From the sequence record MZ622713.1: DNA of 64,000 nt; one strand, given 5' to 3'. Position numbers and translations under genes: made by a program. Below, piece after piece: positions 1,320 to 62,268 of this stretch (its first letter is position 1; each line of letters starts with the position of its first letter). The notes beneath the pieces are model-generated. The model made no database searches. It had not been told where the DNA came from and saw only the letters and a list, made by a program, of their open reading frames with translations.

Positions 1320-3282
1320 ATTCGCTAATTTATCGGAACACCAAGTTATCGGATGGCGTAAAGATCTAATCAAGGTCAAGGTGATCGACGATGAAGGTGA
1401 ATCTTTAGTCAGTACCACCTACGACCTCATTATGACGTGGTACGGTCTGGAACTCCATCGTCGCTATGAACATTTAGGTTTTCCATATTCAGTTAAGGAG
1501 ATCATTAACTGTAAAGTCTATAACGACGCTACGTTACAACGACCACTACAGTACATGTTAGACATCTTAATGGAACACGTTGGTGACCCAGTCGAAGCGG
1601 ATTTGATTAAACAAATCGTTTACGTTTGGCACTTTAAGATGAATAACATCTTGGTTTACCTCGGGTCTCCCGGGGTAATCTCAGCGACCGCTGAAGACGT
1701 AATGGAGGTTTTCAATCATCCTAAGATTGCAGACATCCGTGCGCGTTTAAGACGTGGCGAAATAACCTATGATGAAGCCGAGGAAGAATTCAAGCAAACT
1801 GTAATGCGTGAACCTACTCTGGACTTTTCTACTTTCATCATGCAGGCCCGTACTGGTGCGGTATCCATCAACCAAGGTTTCCAAACCTTTATCTCACGTG
1901 GTGCGTGTTTCGACTTGAACAACCGCATCATGCCGAACCCTATCGAACCGTCATTTGCTGAAGGTATTACTAACTTAGCAGATATCCTAGCTGAATCACG
2001 TTCAGCTGGTAAGGCACTGGTTTCGAATGGTAAGGCTTTGGAAGACTCGGAGTGGTTCCACCGTAAATTGCACTTAACCACATCTCCGGTGAAGGACATT
2101 GATCATTATCATGATTGTGCGACTAACACCACGATGCCGGTTGTACTGAAATCTAAGGAGTTAATCAACTCACTTCAAGGTAAGTACTTCCATGATGAAG
2201 AAGGACATCTTCGTCTAATTACCAGAAACGAAGTTAAGCGACTCAAAGTAGGGGAAACTATTAACATCCGTACTATGCAGTTCTGTCGTAACGAGAAAGC
2301 GCCTTGTGCGGTGTGTTATGGTCAGATGCGAATGTCGGTTCCTTACAACGTTATCATGCGTAAGTCGGCTAACCCGGGTATGTTGAGTGGCACTGCTGTA
2401 GCCGAACCTATCGGTCAAGGTATGTTGTCAACGAAACACTTCATGCGTCACGTTCAGGCGGTTCCGTTTACGGTAATGACTGGTGACCATGAATACATCA
2501 CTACCAATGGGGATGACATCTTCTTAAAACACGAGATGACGAAATGTGCTACTCGTATCCAACTTCCAGTGGCGATGGTTAATGAACTAACTGACCTACG
2601 TTCTATGGAAAACTTGGATGAAGTGCAAGATGACCAATTGACTTGTTTCCCTACGTTAACTTTAACGTACGAAATGGAAGACCCTATGTTGCCGGGAACT
2701 AAGACGGAAACTACGGTCCACTTGGATACTCAAGTCAGTTCTCGACAAGCTCGTATGTCGAAAGAGTTCATCGAGTACACCATGCGTAAAGGTTGGGAGA
2801 AAACCAAGAAATACATCGAGATCGACGTATCTGATTTTGATGCTGACTACCCACTGCTTACCCTACCTTATGTATATGAGGATTTGGATAAGTACCGTAG
2901 TGAGATTGAATCTTTCTTGGCATTATCTCGTCGTAATAAAGCATGGCGTGACACAGTCGTGACTCCTGAGTTCTTCGGTCAAGTCATGGTGGACTTCTGG
3001 TTGTTAATCAACCGTAAGTTCAAGAACATCAACATGGTTCATATCGAAACCTTATTACACAGTACTACTGCTGTGGCACCTAGTGAGGGATTGTATAGGT
3101 TGCCGGTGGGGGATGAACCTCGCTATTTCATTCCGTTTAAGAATGCGATAGAAAACCGAGGGTTTGGTTCTTTGTTGATCTACCAAGGTCAAAACAAAGT
3201 AATTGAATCTCCGTCTACGTTCTACATTAAAGAACGTCAGGCAACGGCAATGGAGTGTTTCTTTACTAACGCTGTTAACTAG
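1297..3282 (+). CDS. rpoC: Non-virion RNA polymerase beta' subunit, C-terminal part (phiKZ gp74-like)
   Basis: Bridge-helix-like ESRSAGKAL...SEWFHRKL, then DCAT, the Zn motif IRTMQFC...CAVCYG, and trigger-loop-like GTAVAEPIGQGMLSTKH. Confidence 0.9.
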   Translation: MKTISLREFANLSEHQVIGWRKDLIKVKVIDDEGESLVSTTYDLIMTWYGLELHRRYEHLGFPYSVKEIINCKVYNDATLQRPLQYMLDILMEHVGDPVEADLIKQIVYVWHFKMNNILVYLGSPGVISATAEDVMEVFNHPKIADIRARLRRGEITYDEAEEEFKQTVMREPTLDFSTFIMQARTGAVSINQGFQTFISRGACFDLNNRIMPNPIEPSFAEGITNLADILAESRSAGKALVSNGKALEDSEWFHRKLHLTTSPVKDIDHYHDCATNTTMPVVLKSKELINSLQGKYFHDEEGHLRLITRNEVKRLKVGETINIRTMQFCRNEKAPCAVCYGQMRMSVPYNVIMRKSANPGMLSGTAVAEPIGQGMLSTKHFMRHVQAVPFTVMTGDHEYITTNGDDIFLKHEMTKCATRIQLPVAMVNELTDLRSMENLDEVQDDQLTCFPTLTLTYEMEDPMLPGTKTETTVHLDTQVSSRQARMSKEFIEYTMRKGWEKTKKYIEIDVSDFDADYPLLTLPYVYEDLDKYRSEIESFLALSRRNKAWRDTVVTPEFFGQVMVDFWLLINRKFKNINMVHIETLLHSTTAVAPSEGLYRLPVGDEPRYFIPFKNAIENRGFGSLLIYQGQNKVIESPSTFYIKERQATAMECFFTNAVN

Positions 3283-3290
3283 GAGGTAAC

Positions 3291-4823
3291 ATGCGCTCTA
3301 CTGTAACTGTGTGGAAGGGCGGGACTTACCTAAGAATAACAGACTACAAAGCGCCGTTCGTGCAAGATGTCATTATGCCATTTTGTCGTCGGCGTTTATA
3401 TCGTTTAGGTCAGGTACCTATCCCGGGTACTCGACAGAAACGAACTGTAGTCACGCATTCTTTTGCTCGCATGAATAATGACCGAAGTGAATTCCGTATC
3501 TCAGCGGGCTTGTTAGACGACTTCATCCAGTTTATGGAAGGGGTGGGCTATAAAGAAGCGCGCGTGAAGATTAAAGATGAACCGGTCATTAAAGGGAAAG
3601 ACGTTGAGTTCAAATGGAAAGAGGGTTGGGGTGAGCCTAGAGAGCATCAGGTAGATTGGTGTGAGTACCAATTGCAGGATGGTCCAGTTAAGGTGAACAA
3701 CGCCCAGACAGGCGACGGTAAGTCGTTCATGGCGACGCATACCATGGTGAATACCGGTAAGCGTACCTTGATCACTTGTTTGCCTCGTTATGTGTCCATT
3801 TGGCTTGAGTCTCTTGGGAATTCTGTTGAGCTATTTCCTGAAGACATTATGTTGGTGGGGAACGGAAAGATCGAAGAAGCGGCTGAGACTATTAAGTCCG
3901 GTCGAGCTGACCCTAAGATCGTTATCCTTCCCCTTACTCGCTATGATACTTATCTTAAGCGGGAACGTGAAGAAGACATCCCTTGTTTGGATGAAGTCTT
4001 TACCGACATGGAAATTGGTCTAAGGATTATGGATGAAGCGCACGAGGATATCTATCGTGTGTACATGTCTATGTTGTTCGGCAACTTTGAGAAAACCATC
4101 GCGTTGTCCGCTACCTTAAAAGCAGATGACCCGTTCGTGAATGACATCTATCGTTATGTCTATCCGTTCAAGATGCGTCTCAAAGAGCCAGAGTACAAGA
4201 AGTACATTGACGTTATTGCATATCACCATTACATCGATATGCAGAAATACCGTATCAACACCAAAGGATTTGGTGGGTATTCTCACGTTAAGTACGAACA
4301 GGCCATTATGAAGACCCCTAAACTCTATGAGCAATACTTAGAGTTATGTAAGCAAGCCTTTGAAGAATTCTACGTGAACGATCACAAAGAAGGACAGAAG
4401 TGTTTGTGGTTCTTTAGCACGGTAGAGATGGCGACTCGAATGAAGAACGATTTCGAAGAAGCCTACCCAGACATGGACATCTGGAAATTTACCAACGCTG
4501 AGTCTAAGAACAAAGAAACGGAAATGTCCTACATGGAACACCAAGTGGTCTTCACTACGCCGCAGTCCTGTGGTACTGGTAAAGATATCCCAGACTTGGC
4601 TGTGTCGTTCAGTCCGTATGCTTGTTCATCTAGACAACGTAATGACCAAATGTTAGGTCGTACCCGTCCGTTGAAAAACTACCCGGGTGATGATCCTAAG
4701 TTCGTCTACTTCGTGTGTAACTCTATTCCTAAGCAAAAAGAGTACCACCAAAAACGAAAAGAATTGTTTGCGGTTAAATCCAAAACCCACCGTAACATCA
4801 ATTCATTCCACCACATTGTTTAG
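3291..4823 (+). CDS. Superfamily 2 DExH helicase (phiKZ gp75-like)
   Basis: Walker A AQTGDGKS, motif II DEAH, motif III ALSAT, motif VI QMLGRTR; GGAGG RBS upstream. Confidence 0.92.
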   Translation: MRSTVTVWKGGTYLRITDYKAPFVQDVIMPFCRRRLYRLGQVPIPGTRQKRTVVTHSFARMNNDRSEFRISAGLLDDFIQFMEGVGYKEARVKIKDEPVIKGKDVEFKWKEGWGEPREHQVDWCEYQLQDGPVKVNNAQTGDGKSFMATHTMVNTGKRTLITCLPRYVSIWLESLGNSVELFPEDIMLVGNGKIEEAAETIKSGRADPKIVILPLTRYDTYLKREREEDIPCLDEVFTDMEIGLRIMDEAHEDIYRVYMSMLFGNFEKTIALSATLKADDPFVNDIYRYVYPFKMRLKEPEYKKYIDVIAYHHYIDMQKYRINTKGFGGYSHVKYEQAIMKTPKLYEQYLELCKQAFEEFYVNDHKEGQKCLWFFSTVEMATRMKNDFEEAYPDMDIWKFTNAESKNKETEMSYMEHQVVFTTPQSCGTGKDIPDLAVSFSPYACSSRQRNDQMLGRTRPLKNYPGDDPKFVYFVCNSIPKQKEYHQKRKELFAVKSKTHRNINSFHHIV

Positions 4824-8908: not shown

Positions 8909-9658
8909 ATGTCAAATGTTAACAAACGTAAACAAGCTAAACGTAAGGCTCGTCAACGTAACGTACAAGCTAATAAAGTAAAAAACCGTTTGAAAGAAGT
9001 ACAAGAGCGTAAAGATCACGCCCAAGCTGTTTTTGATGAAAACTTCGGTGGACACGAGATGTCTGACGGAATGAAAGTCGATGCCAAGAAAAAGTTCTGG
9101 GAAGTGTTCAGTAAATTACCGGTGCAGTTACAGAAAGAAGCCATCGAGTCATTCGAGAAAAACGGTAACAAAGTAACACCGCTAGACGTGGAAGGCATCA
9201 CCAACTTATTGTGTGAAGGTTTGAATTACTACATTCGTCCTCACGCTTTGGTAGCGACACTACACTCACTAGTTGAGCAAGAAAAGTTAGTGCTTACTCC
9301 TGAGCTACTCCAGAAAATGGATGAGATGGACGCAGCGACTTTGAACTACATCTCTAAAGCGACTGCTGTTCTTTCTCGCTTTGAACTATTGACCGGCATG
9401 ACGGAAGAACAAAAAGCTAAGTTCATGTTGGAAGATGAAGTGCTAAGTGAAGAACTGATTCCTACCATGTCTCTTTACCAACAAGACAAAGATGAGATCA
9501 TTGACGAACTTATCGAACTAGCTAGCCCACATACCGACTTAGTGGATGAAGATGTGAAGTTCGTTGGTGAGGTTCTTGGTCTCGCTAACTTGTACGACGT
9601 TTCTCGTCAAATCCATTTAGAACGCGTTGAAGACCTATTGAAAGTTAAGGGTAAATAA
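8909..9658 (+). CDS. Hypothetical protein with basic N-terminus and acidic helical body
   Basis: AAGGA RBS; begins MSNVNKRKQAKRKARQR. Confidence 0.8.
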   Translation: MSNVNKRKQAKRKARQRNVQANKVKNRLKEVQERKDHAQAVFDENFGGHEMSDGMKVDAKKKFWEVFSKLPVQLQKEAIESFEKNGNKVTPLDVEGITNLLCEGLNYYIRPHALVATLHSLVEQEKLVLTPELLQKMDEMDAATLNYISKATAVLSRFELLTGMTEEQKAKFMLEDEVLSEELIPTMSLYQQDKDEIIDELIELASPHTDLVDEDVKFVGEVLGLANLYDVSRQIHLERVEDLLKVKGK

Positions 9659-9659
9659 G

Positions 9660-11276
9660 ATGACTGAAGAGTCAAAAGAAATCAAACGCCCTGTGTTGCG
9701 TGAAACACACACAGAAGAAAACACCACCATGAAAGAATCGACTCAACCGGTTCTTCCTAAGAAAGTTGAAGATAAAGGTGTTGAAGCATCACTCAACATT
9801 TTGCTAGGGACTAAGAAAAACAACTTCGTTCCTACCATGACCATGGCGATGGCTTGGGCTCGTTACCAGACCGCCCTAGTGGAAGGTAAAGCAACCAAAG
9901 CAGAGATCACTCGTTACAAGAAACAATACGAAGATCAAGCTAAAGAGCTACACCCTGATAAGACGGACGAAGAACTAGAGACTATGTTGTCTCACTTCTT
10001 AAGCTTCCATCACAACCTAGTGGAGCTGCCGTACTTCCGTAACCCGGCTATGCAATCCCGTAATTGGGAGAACACTTGCACCATCGCTGATAATCATTGT
10101 GAAAGTGATATCGTTGCTCGTTTCCCGGGTGCTAAGAATGAAGCAGTAGCGTTAAGTGAGCGCATGCAACGTTCGTCACAACGTAAGAGTCGCACACCTA
10201 ACGGTTACGACGTATTAATGCGTGACTCGTTTATTCAGGTTCGTGTTGAACCTAGTAACATGATCGAACTCGGTAACTTGATCGACAAAATCAACAAACA
10301 CATTCATGGTTATGTGACTACCTTTAACGGTAACTCTATGACCTTGATTCGTGCTTCGATTTATCGTGAGTTTTGGAACTACATCTCTGAAAAGATCATC
10401 TCGCATTCAGTTACTGATATCGACGAACCTCGTGACCTGACTCGTTTGGTTAAGCTGTCCGACATCCGTGCTTTGTTCATTGAGATGATGACCGAGCTAG
10501 CTGAAGATGGTGTTCCTGTTCAACTTTACTGTAACCAGAACGGTTGTAACTGGGTTGAGTTAGTCAAAGCTGACCCGATGCACATGTTGTGGCATGACAA
10601 GTCTTTGTTGACAGGTGAACAAGCGGCGGCTCTAGGTAACCTTAAGAACTTTGCTCAGCGTTACACAGCGGAACAAGTTCTAGAGTTGCAAGATCAGTCT
10701 AAGTTCGTAGAAGACGATTTCGTGATGTTCCATAACGACACACACCGTCTTCGCTTTAGCCAGCCAACGTTGTCTGAGTACTTCTGTGCATTCGATGTTT
10801 TCACTAGCTATGTGGAACCGTCTATCCGTGAAATCCGCACAGAGACTCTAAACGACAAAGACTACGATCAAAAACTGTCCGTGCTTATTGACACAGTTCG
10901 TGGTCTTGAATACATGCACTGGTGTTCTGAACTTACCATCTTCCCAGAAGCAGGTTCTGATGATGAACCAGAAGTGTTTACTCGTCGTGAGGACCCAATC
11001 GGTTTCTTCAATGGCATCTTACCTATCATTGATAACTCGAATGAAGCAACCAGCAAAATCATTCACTGGTGTGTGGAAAATGGCCCGGGTATGAGCTTCA
11101 CGGTAGTTGGTATGAGTAACGCGGCATGTCCTCAATGTGGTAAAGAAACACACGGTGGTCATACTGCACACGGCATTACTCCAATCGACCCGTTCATGAG
11201 TTTTTTCATCCTGACCCGCCAAACGATTTCCGATCGCGCGGTGAAACGAGGAATTCTTGTTCCGAACACCCTTTAA
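9660..11276 (+). CDS. Putative tail/baseplate assembly chaperone with Cys pairs (G-like product)
   Basis: YCNQNGC and ACPQCG motifs, then PIDPFMSFF near the C-terminus. This pattern recalls myophage baseplate-hub/tail chaperones; the function is inferred. Confidence 0.55.
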   Translation: MTEESKEIKRPVLRETHTEENTTMKESTQPVLPKKVEDKGVEASLNILLGTKKNNFVPTMTMAMAWARYQTALVEGKATKAEITRYKKQYEDQAKELHPDKTDEELETMLSHFLSFHHNLVELPYFRNPAMQSRNWENTCTIADNHCESDIVARFPGAKNEAVALSERMQRSSQRKSRTPNGYDVLMRDSFIQVRVEPSNMIELGNLIDKINKHIHGYVTTFNGNSMTLIRASIYREFWNYISEKIISHSVTDIDEPRDLTRLVKLSDIRALFIEMMTELAEDGVPVQLYCNQNGCNWVELVKADPMHMLWHDKSLLTGEQAAALGNLKNFAQRYTAEQVLELQDQSKFVEDDFVMFHNDTHRLRFSQPTLSEYFCAFDVFTSYVEPSIREIRTETLNDKDYDQKLSVLIDTVRGLEYMHWCSELTIFPEAGSDDEPEVFTRREDPIGFFNGILPIIDNSNEATSKIIHWCVENGPGMSFTVVGMSNAACPQCGKETHGGHTAHGITPIDPFMSFFILTRQTISDRAVKRGILVPNTL

Positions 11277-11728
11277 GTCCCGGGACCTTAACTGGCAACT
11301 TATACCACAAGTATCGAGAGAAAATTCAAGCTCTTGATGCCGACGGTGTTACCGATGTACAACATCAAACTATCGCGTTGATGTTGTACCGTGCTGGTTA
11401 TGGTCAACTCGGGTATTCCCCTAACCCGGGGGATGACATTAAAATGCATGACGACACCTATGAGTATGAACATCACTGGTCTATTCAAAACAGGGCAAAG
11501 ACTTATGCGTTTTATGAATTAAAGGAAATCTTCGGAGACATTAATAACTATCTTAAGCTTTCACCTAAGGTGGCTTCTGAGATAGTTAAAGGTGTCCGTA
11601 AAGGTGCTGAACAGCTCCATGAGCTGCGTAAGCGTCAAGACTCTAATCGTCCTAAGTCTTCAGAGCAACACGACTTAGAACGTCAACTAGAAGAACTCAG
11701 CCGCCTAAATCCATCCAGCGGGTCATAA
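11201..11728 (+). CDS. Downstream ORF probably reached by -1 frameshift (GT/E'-like extension)
   Basis: The -1 frame is open from 11144 to 11728. There is no Shine-Dalgarno before the first TTG/ATG (11378/11381). Slippery T TTT TTC at 11201-11207 is in the correct register. Confidence 0.6.
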   Translation, partial: FFHPDPPNDFRSRGETRNSCSEHPLSPGTLTGNLYHKYREKIQALDADGVTDVQHQTIALMLYRAGYGQLGYSPNPGDDIKMHDDTYEYEHHWSIQNRAKTYAFYELKEIFGDINNYLKLSPKVASEIVKGVRKGAEQLHELRKRQDSNRPKSSEQHDLERQLEELSRLNPSSGS

Positions 11729-11732
11729 CGAT

Positions 11733-11764
11733 AATACCTGCCCGTTGAGGGTAGGTATTATTTT
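11733..11764 (+). terminator. Rho-independent terminator
   Basis: AATACCTGCCC-gttga-GGGTAGGTATT followed by ATTTT. Confidence 0.75.
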
Positions 11765-61816: not shown

Positions 61817-61821
61817 TAATG

Positions 61822-61877
61822 AAGATGAGGATGTTATGGGTGAAAGCCTGTAACATCCTTGTCATCTTTATTTTTTT
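61822..61877 (+). terminator. Rho-independent terminator
   Basis: AAGATGA/GGATGTTATGGG...CCTGTAACATCC/TCATCTT stem followed by a T-tract. Confidence 0.75.
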
Positions 61878-61902
61878 GTCTATTCTTAAAAGGTCGAATC
61901 TA

Positions 61903-62268
61903 ATGAGCATTGAAGTCGTACCTCACCCGATTCCGTTTCTTAAGGAAGCGTTGACTCTGGGTGATCTAGAAGACTTTAAACCACGACTGAAAAAGTTATT
62001 GGTTAAAGAAAACATCCCTAATGATTTCGAGCACTCGGAGTTAGAGATGTGTAAAACTGTGCTTTACGATAAAGGCTGGTACCGCGGAGACGCGGAACTT
62101 ACACATGATGTCAGTGTCGTTTTCTTGTGGTGGTATGAACTAAGTGGTGGTCGTGAGTTATTCATGAAACGCGCTTATGATCACTTCCATTTGCTAGGTG
62201 ACTATAATTTCAAATTCTTCGGACATCTGGACGCTTTATACCAAACCTACGAAATCATGAAAAAGTAA
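61903..62268 (+). CDS. Hypothetical protein
   Basis: AAAGGT RBS before the ATG at 61903; the upstream ATGs fall inside the terminator. Confidence 0.7.
   Translation: MSIEVVPHPIPFLKEALTLGDLEDFKPRLKKLLVKENIPNDFEHSELEMCKTVLYDKGWYRGDAELTHDVSVVFLWWYELSGGRELFMKRAYDHFHLLGDYNFKFFGHLDALYQTYEIMKK

Follow-up and report, generated by a model that had tools for sequence, protein, structure and literature searches.

Does the run of Ts near the end of a 538-aa reading frame in Vibrio phage phiKT1019 merely encode two phenylalanines, or does it cause a fraction of ribosomes to slip back one base and make a second, longer protein? We addressed this in a window of 64,000 nucleotides of the phage sequence (MZ622713.1), in which all features described below lie on the + strand. 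The ORF at 9660-11276 consists of 538 codons plus TAA, and close to its end the 0-frame codons read AGT TTT TTC, so that the heptamer T TTT TTC occupies 11201-11207 in X XXY YYZ register. The -1 frame is open from 11144 to the TAA at 11726-11728. The first canonical start in that frame is a TTG at 11378 and the annotated ATG is at 11381, neither of which is preceded by a GGAGG-like stretch. A shifted product would have 516 + 173 = 689 residues, against 538 for the 0-frame product. The observation made from the sequence in the first-pass annotation, i.e. the heptamer in register followed by an open -1 frame, was thereby confirmed. The arrangement is more than chance, since among 55 in-register XXXYYYZ heptamers inside ORFs of at least 100 aa in the window this one is followed by 175 open -1 codons, whereas the next best has 37.

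To identify the gene we searched profile and sequence databases with each part separately. The 538-aa ORF is the homologue of phiKZ gp77, PhiPA3 gp074, 201phi2-1 gp136, EL gp47, Goslar gp081 and SPN3US gp39. It matches phrog_4585 end to end, tblastn gave hits in 130-211 phage records and an HMM search found 351 representatives. The homology also includes RAY gp267, and the supplement of PMC10299810 lists Goslar gp081 and phiKZ gp077 as core gene cg18 of the Chimalliviridae, a gene of unknown function shared by all nucleus-forming jumbo phages. Four Cys and the FF pair are invariant. The -1 frame contains a conserved domain at 11324-11725 matching phrog_24181 (E = 1.9e-56, profile positions 2-136 of 137), which is predicted to be all-helical. 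Both PHROGs families are listed as unknown function, Pfam gave only sub-threshold unrelated hits, and PDB sequence searches with profiles of both parts returned no relatives. Structure models were too poor to show that the two parts form one fold (pLDDT 48.6 for the 538-aa protein and 52.3 for the AF2 model of the -1 domain), and Foldseek of the former against the PDB gave nothing below E = 0.6. Attempts to deepen the alignments added little, as a word-indexed search returned only the same 11 close relatives even with a 13-genus profile, and of two IMG/VR scans one had no usable conserved stretch and the other returned only the same isolates.

The gene order around the locus is conserved. The upstream neighbour at 8909-9658 is phiKZ gp78-like (phrog_26494) and its stop lies 1 nt before the ATG at 9660, so the two genes are probably co-transcribed and translationally coupled; the same order was seen in every relative, and the order with the gp78-, gp79- and gp80-like genes is kept. 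Directly after the -1 ORF, at 11730-11762, a 14-bp hairpin followed by Us (-21.4 kcal/mol, z = -5.9, 0 of 200 shuffles fold as well) looks like a terminator that closes the transcription unit.

If the T run is a recoding site, it should be kept in relatives together with an open -1 frame, and we therefore compared 31 related genomes from about 21 genera, reaching down to about 20% protein identity. In 30 of the 31, including phiKZ-type KTN4, PhiPA3, 201phi2-1, EL, OBP, SPN3US, Goslar, PCH45 and RSF1, the small downstream ORF is in the -1 frame and continuous with an A-site U UUY motif, and 27 have a perfect T TTT TTY in register. Three lineages have an imperfect P-site part (G TTT TTT, A TTT TTC and G GTT TTT), and one record, RTH11, departs from the frame pattern. 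The frameshift is not annotated in any of these genomes. The -1 frame carries stops at about 10% of codons in the gene body but none in the 9-45 codons between the heptamer and the 0-frame stop (open in 30 of 30 genomes; summed log10 P about -21 over 21 lineages). In about half of the genomes the last upstream -1 stop is only 6-12 nt before the heptamer, so the shift point is bracketed to about -6 to +27 nt. Codon usage does not explain the run, as TTC is the preferred Phe codon in most of the genes compared, and even so the first Phe is TTT and the preceding codon ends in T although its amino acid varies (S, G, A, N, V, T and others); this holds in 19 of 21 lineages (summed log10 P about -20.5). 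In E. coli the most efficient -1 motifs allow cognate A-site re-pairing from ZZN to ZZZ (PMC4066793), a rule that U UUY fits.

Selection at the site was examined next. Synonymous variation is suppressed at 11181-11231 and reaches its gene-wide minimum there, with a rate of 0.023 in the 13-codon window starting at 11193 against 0.449 overall, and a run of about 40 nt is identical in three phages that are about 74% identical overall. The suppression 3' of the heptamer can, however, be explained by dual coding alone. In the overlap at 11208-11276, where both frames are open, the 0 frame encoding the 22-residue tail of the short form is the constrained one (pN/pS 0.51) and the -1 frame (1.11) serves as a variable linker until an [H/S/N]-P-L motif that straddles the 0-frame stop. 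The HPL motif is kept through CCT/CCA/CCG changes that alter the 0-frame residue (L, H or R) just before that stop. Beyond the 0-frame stop only the -1 frame is open, and at 11280-11354, upstream of most start codons, its pN/pS is 0.40. The first ATG, GTG or TTG lies 8-85 codons after the shift point, and in KTN4 (85 codons), Ea35-70, EL, RisingSun and phiKT1019 it lies at or after the conserved AYxxDxGI / LYRAGYG motif, which argues that independent initiation cannot make the conserved domain there. In a few genomes (2 TSL-2019, pTD1, 201phi2-1) a GTG or TTG lies just after the 0-frame stop and the domain could also be made alone. No single-ORF fusion was found among the 95 best representatives whose match reaches the C-terminal end of the profile (at most 42 residues follow the match), and the two-frame arrangement itself is therefore what is maintained.

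The first-pass annotation also proposed a stimulatory hairpin downstream of the heptamer (CCGC/GCGG enclosing CGAT/ATCG). It can be drawn, but the 90 nt from the heptamer fold no better than shuffles (z = -0.02), RNAalifold found no consensus pairs in 8 relatives, and six of its 9 pairs are broken in some relatives with none covarying. RNAalifold over 196 nt gave a GGUGG/CCGCC pairing and a mini-hairpin over the run itself, which were not adopted as no covariation was seen. Across 21 lineages there was no family-wide excess of 3' stability (median percentile about 0.4-0.5), with only Goslar, PCH45 and BONAISHI standing out, and an Rfam scan found nothing. There is also no SD-like stretch 10-14 nt upstream. 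Hence no stimulatory element, which is common but not obligatory at such sites, was found by these searches, although they did not cover pseudoknots and long-range pairings exhaustively.

Taken together, our results are best explained by a family-wide -1 programmed ribosomal frameshift, to which we assign a probability of roughly 0.76. In this model most ribosomes read the 0 frame to the TAA at 11274-11276 and make the 538-aa protein, whereas a fraction, with the two Phe codons in the P and A sites, slip one base back by tandem tRNA-Phe re-pairing on U UUU UUC and continue in the -1 frame (11207-11728, 173 codons plus TAA). The resulting 689-aa protein would share the first 516 residues, but its last 22 residues would be replaced by a linker and the conserved, predicted helical domain of about 135 aa. 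The small downstream gene annotated in these phages, for which GenBank gives only 11381-11728 in phiKT1019, would then be mainly, perhaps only, the C-terminal part of the long isoform. The signal, the open frame, its conservation across the family and the frame-specific selection are established by the sequence comparison, while the long product itself, the slipping of ribosomes rather than of RNA polymerase, the ratio of the two products and their role are inferred. The genomic context suggests the replication, transcription or virion-RNAP module of nucleus-forming phages. As no conserved 3' structure was found, the site may work through the slippery run itself, helped by flanking nucleotides or, more speculatively, by the conserved nascent peptide (G-x-T-P-x-D...FF).

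The interpretation in the first-pass annotation was thus only partly supported: the frameshift joining the two ORFs is strongly supported by the 31 genomes, but neither the hairpin nor the label of a G/GT-type chaperone pair is. Lambda G/GT and P2 E/E' likewise use a -1 slip near the end of the first ORF to yield a minor longer protein sharing the N-terminus, are conserved by position across very divergent phages, and P2, according to the first-pass annotation, uses a T-rich heptamer. This two-product logic, here inferred from the conserved signal, is the only feature shared. Our locus is not between the tail tube and tape measure genes but in the replication and transcription block, between a virion-RNAP subunit with a gp79-like gene and the DNA polymerase; the neighbours are an RNAP beta-type subunit, gp79-like and gp78-like genes, two small ORFs and the DNA polymerase, and in PhiPA3 and 201phi2-1 a DNA helicase is nearby. 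The short form has 538 aa with a four-Cys site rather than about 140 aa, whereas tail assembly chaperone pairs have a short form of about 100-150 aa and a long form that adds a domain binding the tail tube. No tail-chaperone Pfam or PHROG family matches either part. The likeness to myophage hub or tail chaperones is only a suggestion, without support from these data. The annotation was right that no tape measure gene is adjacent, and apparently right that the event is undescribed in phiKZ-like phages, as our literature search, which included two jumbo-phage reviews, the core-genome paper, the Goslar virion structure, a PCH45 Tn-seq preprint, the Atkins recoding review and the PRFect paper, found no mention of a frameshift in this gene.

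Other recoding systems offer partial parallels. In phage T7 gene 10A/10B a -1 slip on a U-rich site near the end of the ORF also replaces a short C-terminus with a longer one, without a classical adjacent stimulatory hairpin, and the X_XX part can be G_GU (PMC5009743), as in the G GTT TTT of the Logan P0011 lineage. The T7 product is a capsid protein, whereas cg18 is a non-structural-looking core protein with an extension of about 173 residues including a conserved domain and a signal conserved across a whole virus family. E. coli dnaX tau/gamma likewise gives two isoforms sharing the N-terminal part by a -1 shift on a homopolymeric heptamer in a gene of the replication apparatus, but there shifting truncates the protein and depends on an upstream SD-like element and a 3' hairpin, whereas here it would extend the protein and neither stimulator was found. 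The IS3-family orfA-orfB transposases are also made from overlapping 0 and -1 frames by a slip on a homopolymeric heptamer, and the downstream ORF often lacks its own start; those sites are usually A AAA AAG with a defined downstream structure, and no relation in sequence or function was found.

Of the alternatives, transcriptional slippage survives best, although we consider it unlikely. If the phage or host RNA polymerase added one extra U while copying the run, ordinary translation would give exactly the same long protein. Many relatives have T7 or T8 runs, longer than the heptamer rule needs, no 3' RNA stimulator was found, and these phages use unusual multisubunit RNAPs whose slippage behaviour is unknown, in particular on short runs. 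On the other hand, the window and 13 other genomes have only T6, and PA1C and the Logan P0011 lineage only T5, which is shorter than the runs of about 8-9 or more typical of bacterial RNAP slippage (reviewed in PMC5009743). Moreover, the run keeps a fixed register, covering X XXY YY in 27 of 31 genomes, which polymerase slippage does not need, and what is retained in the degenerate cases is the A-site U UUY motif. Less likely still are two ordinary genes, with the downstream ORF translated on its own, by reinitiation after the upstream stop or from a non-canonical start codon, and the T run merely encoding a conserved Phe-Phe. All database records annotate two genes, FF is invariant at the protein level, a few genomes have a GTG or TTG just after the upstream stop and PHROGs holds the small ORF as its own family. 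This reading does not explain why the -1 frame is the one used in 30 of 31 genomes, why it is never closed between the run and the 0-frame stop in these, why codon choice builds the run against preference, why the -1 frame is constrained before the 0-frame stop and upstream of most start codons, or why KTN4 has no start for 85 codons into the conserved part. A homopolymer sequencing error or pseudogenisation of one long ORF, although such runs are error-prone and RTH11 shows a frame departure of this sort, can be dismissed since the same frame relation appears in 30 independently sequenced genomes and metagenomic contigs, the 0-frame tail after the run is conserved and under purifying selection and matches the end of the phrog_4585 profile, and none of the 95 representatives is a single long ORF.

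A further possibility, which we regard as unlikely but cannot exclude, is that the recoding is a structure-independent event that defines the family, either ribosomal slippage driven by the run together with the conserved nascent peptide or stuttering by the phages' multisubunit RNA polymerases. It would set a fixed ratio of two isoforms of an essential core protein of the phage-nucleus lifestyle, with the added domain switching partner, localisation (for example inside or outside the phage nucleus) or packaging. This would be a new regulatory layer in chimallivirus biology and a new type of stimulator-less or polymerase-based recoding signal.

Programmed -1 frameshifting on such heptamers is already known in phages, and what is apparently new is its very probable presence in this core gene. 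It would add a family-wide phage frameshift outside the tail-chaperone and capsid cases, apparently without a classical downstream structure. The small downstream gene in more than 200 deposited genomes would be mis-annotated, as in phiKZ-type phages, where the annotated ORF covers only the last part of the conserved domain. If cg18 makes two isoforms, experiments on it, such as tagging, localisation, pull-downs, essentiality screens and structure work, have to account for both forms.

Vibrio phage phiKT1019 (MZ622713.1), of which the window is the first 64 kb, is a 239-kb nucleus-forming jumbo phage related to Aphrodite1, PDCC-1, pTD1 and VP4B (Gorgonvirinae). The ORF at 9660-11276 encodes 538 residues, and its codons AGT TTT TTC place the heptamer T TTT TTC at 11201-11207 in X XXY YYZ register. 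The -1 frame is open from 11144 to the stop at 11726-11728, and its first canonical start is a TTG at 11378 (the annotated ATG is at 11381), with no Shine-Dalgarno-like stretch before it. A shifted product would have 516 + 173 = 689 residues. To see whether such an arrangement could arise by chance, we examined all 55 in-register XXXYYYZ heptamers inside ORFs in the window. The heptamer at 11201-11207 is followed by 175 open -1 codons, whereas the runner-up has 37. At least 9 of the 55 are C CCG GGT or C CCG GGG (e.g. at 2373, 3422, 11084, 13008 on the minus strand, 17495, 17915, 35411, 39089 and 56008), which is probably just Pro-Gly in the preferred codons, since the -1 frames after them are short (at most 37 codons). 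The only other in-register T TTT TTN heptamer in the window is T TTT TTG at 61872 (ORF 61819-62268), where the -1 frame closes after 5 codons, so that a slip would only truncate the protein. The observation made in the first-pass annotation is therefore correct and is not a chance feature.

The 538-aa protein matches phrog_4585 end to end, including its own 0-frame C-terminus, while the -1 ORF matches phrog_24181, a 137-residue family, with the match beginning at about 11324, upstream of any start codon. A Pfam search gave nothing significant. The large protein was found by tblastn in 130-211 phage records, all jumbo phages of the phiKZ type, and an HMM search of 1.84 billion representatives returned 351 family members. 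Record notes equate it with phiKZ gp77, 201phi2-1 gp136, PhiPA3 gp074 and EL gp47, and the supplement of the Chimalliviridae core-genome paper lists it as core gene cg18 (Goslar gp081 = phiKZ gp077 = RAY gp267, 'hypothetical protein'; PMC10299810). Four cysteines (C291, C296, C490 and C493) and the Phe-Phe pair encoded by the slippery site are invariant across 13 genera. The neighbours are an RNAP beta-type subunit and a gp79-like gene on the other strand, a tightly coupled gp78-like gene upstream, two small ORFs and the DNA polymerase. At 9656-9662 the stop of the gp78-like gene (TAA, 9656-9658) is 1 nt from the ATG of the cg18 gene, which suggests translational coupling, and the same tight spacing or overlap is seen in the relatives. 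Immediately after the -1 ORF stop, at 11730-11762, a very stable 14-bp hairpin (-21.4 kcal/mol, z = -5.9) followed by Us closes the unit. It was missed by a simple terminator scan, but is probably the terminator of the gp78-gp77 unit.

To test whether the arrangement is conserved, the locus was retrieved from 30 further genomes and contigs covering about 21 genera, with protein identity to the window down to about 20%. The set comprised the Gorgonvirinae; three metagenomic relatives; Klebsiella phage Miami, EL, RisingSun, OBP, pEt-SU and Aeromonas PS1; KTN4 (species phiKZ), PhiPA3, PA1C and 201phi2-1; and SPN3US, Goslar, PCH45, RSF1, RP31, Ea35-70, FBKp24, Moabite, BONAISHI and RTH11. In 30 of the 31 loci (the window included) the small downstream ORF is in the -1 frame relative to cg18, that frame runs without a stop from a T run into the downstream ORF, and the run provides at least the A-site motif U UUY. 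A perfect T TTT TTC or T TTT TTT is present in 27 genomes, with runs of T6 to T8 that always cover positions X XXY YY. PhiPA3 has G TTT TTT, PA1C has A TTT TTC and one metagenomic lineage has G GTT TTT, the G_GU type that the Atkins review (PMC5009743) lists for T7 gene 10. Across the loci the shared part is 487-635 aa, the 0-frame product 507-656 aa, the -1 part 154-180 aa and the predicted shifted product 656-795 aa. The one exception is Xanthomonas phage RTH11 (OQ790161.1), whose record has a single frame departure (a frameshift) from the family pattern, giving an unusually long 627-aa ORF with a tail that does not look like protein. The likely cause, and the simplest explanation, is a homopolymer length call in that record, although it may also be real length variation of the run.

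Several controls were made on the conserved arrangement. In the body of each gene the -1 frame has stops at about 10% of codons (62 in 513 codons in the window), but there is none in the 9-45 codons between the heptamer and the 0-frame stop in any of the 30 genomes. The summed chance probability is about 10^-21 over 21 genus-level lineages treated as independent, which is an approximation. In about half of the genomes the last upstream -1 stop is only 6-12 nt before the heptamer, and in 201phi2-1 the 0-frame stop follows after 27 nt, and the shift point is thus bracketed to the T run. TTC is the preferred Phe codon in most of these genes (18 TTC against 7 TTT in the window), yet in 19 of 21 lineages the first Phe is TTT and the preceding codon ends in T, although its amino acid varies, which by codon usage has a probability of about 10^-20.5. 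Among eight Gorgonvirinae genes the synonymous-difference rate is 0.449 overall and has its gene-wide minimum, 0.023, in the 13 codons starting at 11193. A second, weaker dip (0.18-0.23) lies at 11109-11150, over the codons of the second Cys pair (CPxCG).

We next asked which frame is under constraint along the locus. Between the heptamer and the 0-frame stop the 0 frame is the constrained one (pN/pS 0.51), whereas the -1 frame is not (1.11). After the 0-frame stop only the -1 frame is open, and it is constrained (0.40) in 11280-11354, upstream of the first start codon in most of the eight genomes. A short -1 motif (HPL in the Vibrio phages; SPL, NPL or SFL elsewhere) straddles the 0-frame stop and is kept through CCT, CCA and CCG changes that turn the 0-frame Leu into His or Arg, so -1 decoding is under selection before the 0-frame stop. 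The first ATG, GTG or TTG in the -1 frame lies 8-85 codons after the shift point, and in KTN4 (phiKZ), Ea35-70, EL, RisingSun and phiKT1019 itself it lies at or beyond the most conserved motif of the domain. Independent initiation therefore cannot produce the conserved domain in these phages. None of the 95 best family representatives whose match reaches the C-terminal end of the profile has more than 42 residues after the match, and thus no lineage among them has fused the two parts into one frame.

The first-pass annotation also proposed a hairpin just downstream of the slippery site, and this was not supported. The 90 nt from the site fold no better than shuffled sequences, RNAalifold finds no consensus pairs, and the proposed pairs are broken in most relatives with no compensatory change. 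When 196 nt were analyzed only invariant, non-covarying pairs appeared, among them GGUGG (about 11154-11158) with CCGCC (about 11216-11220) across the slippery site, where both arms are invariant. Across 21 lineages the 40-60 nt after the site are no more stable than the rest of the gene, with the exception of Goslar, PCH45 and BONAISHI, where this sequence is among the most stable 1% of windows of the gene, unlike in the other 18 lineages. Possibly, these are lineage-specific stimulatory structures. A search of Rfam gave no match. The strict nucleotide conservation 3' of the run can be explained by dual coding, but we have no explanation for the conservation of about 8 nt on the 5' side.

Taken together, the best reading of these results, to which we assign a probability of roughly 0.76, is a -1 programmed ribosomal frameshift by tandem tRNA-Phe slippage that gives a short and a long isoform. 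The frame relation, the openness of the -1 frame and the codon choice are seen directly in the sequences, whereas slippage by the ribosome and the two products are inferred from them. This reading is in line with the E. coli rule that the most efficient motifs allow cognate A-site re-pairing (PMC4066793). Transcriptional slippage would give the same protein and, although unlikely, we cannot exclude it for the T7-T8 lineages, but the T6 and T5 runs and the fixed register argue against it as the general mechanism. That the locus holds two ordinary genes is more doubtful still, as this does not explain the frame relation, the openness of the -1 frame or the codon choice. An artefact fails on the same three points and is very improbable.

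The logic is that of lambda G/GT and P2 E/E', of T7 10A/10B and of IS3 orfAB, in which a minor, longer product shares the N-terminus. The interpretation in the first-pass annotation is thus only partly supported, since the frameshift is upheld but the proposed G/GT-type chaperone pair fails as a member of the tail-chaperone family on gene order, size and sequence family, and that part of the designation should be dropped. Attempts to find a function for either inferred isoform gave nothing, as the AlphaFold models of the 538-aa protein and of the -1 domain were both of low confidence, the fold search with the first of these was empty and no PDB relative was found by sequence.

No record among the 31 loci annotates a joined CDS, and our literature searches found no mention of a frameshift in this gene, although an earlier description cannot be ruled out as subscription-only papers were not covered. 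What is known is the logic of a -1 shift yielding a longer product, and what appears to be new is its probable occurrence in cg18. The annotated start positions of the downstream ORF differ from genome to genome. In phiKZ-type phages the annotated ORF (81 aa in KTN4) covers only the last part of the conserved -1 domain, and about 85 conserved codons upstream of it have no start codon. The region concerned is 3103-3563 in the retrieved KTN4 locus and 3168-3563 in that of PA1C, where the ORF is annotated as 'similar to PHIKZ076.4'. We regard the inferred frameshift in this core gene as being of fairly high interest for the biology and the annotation of jumbo phages.
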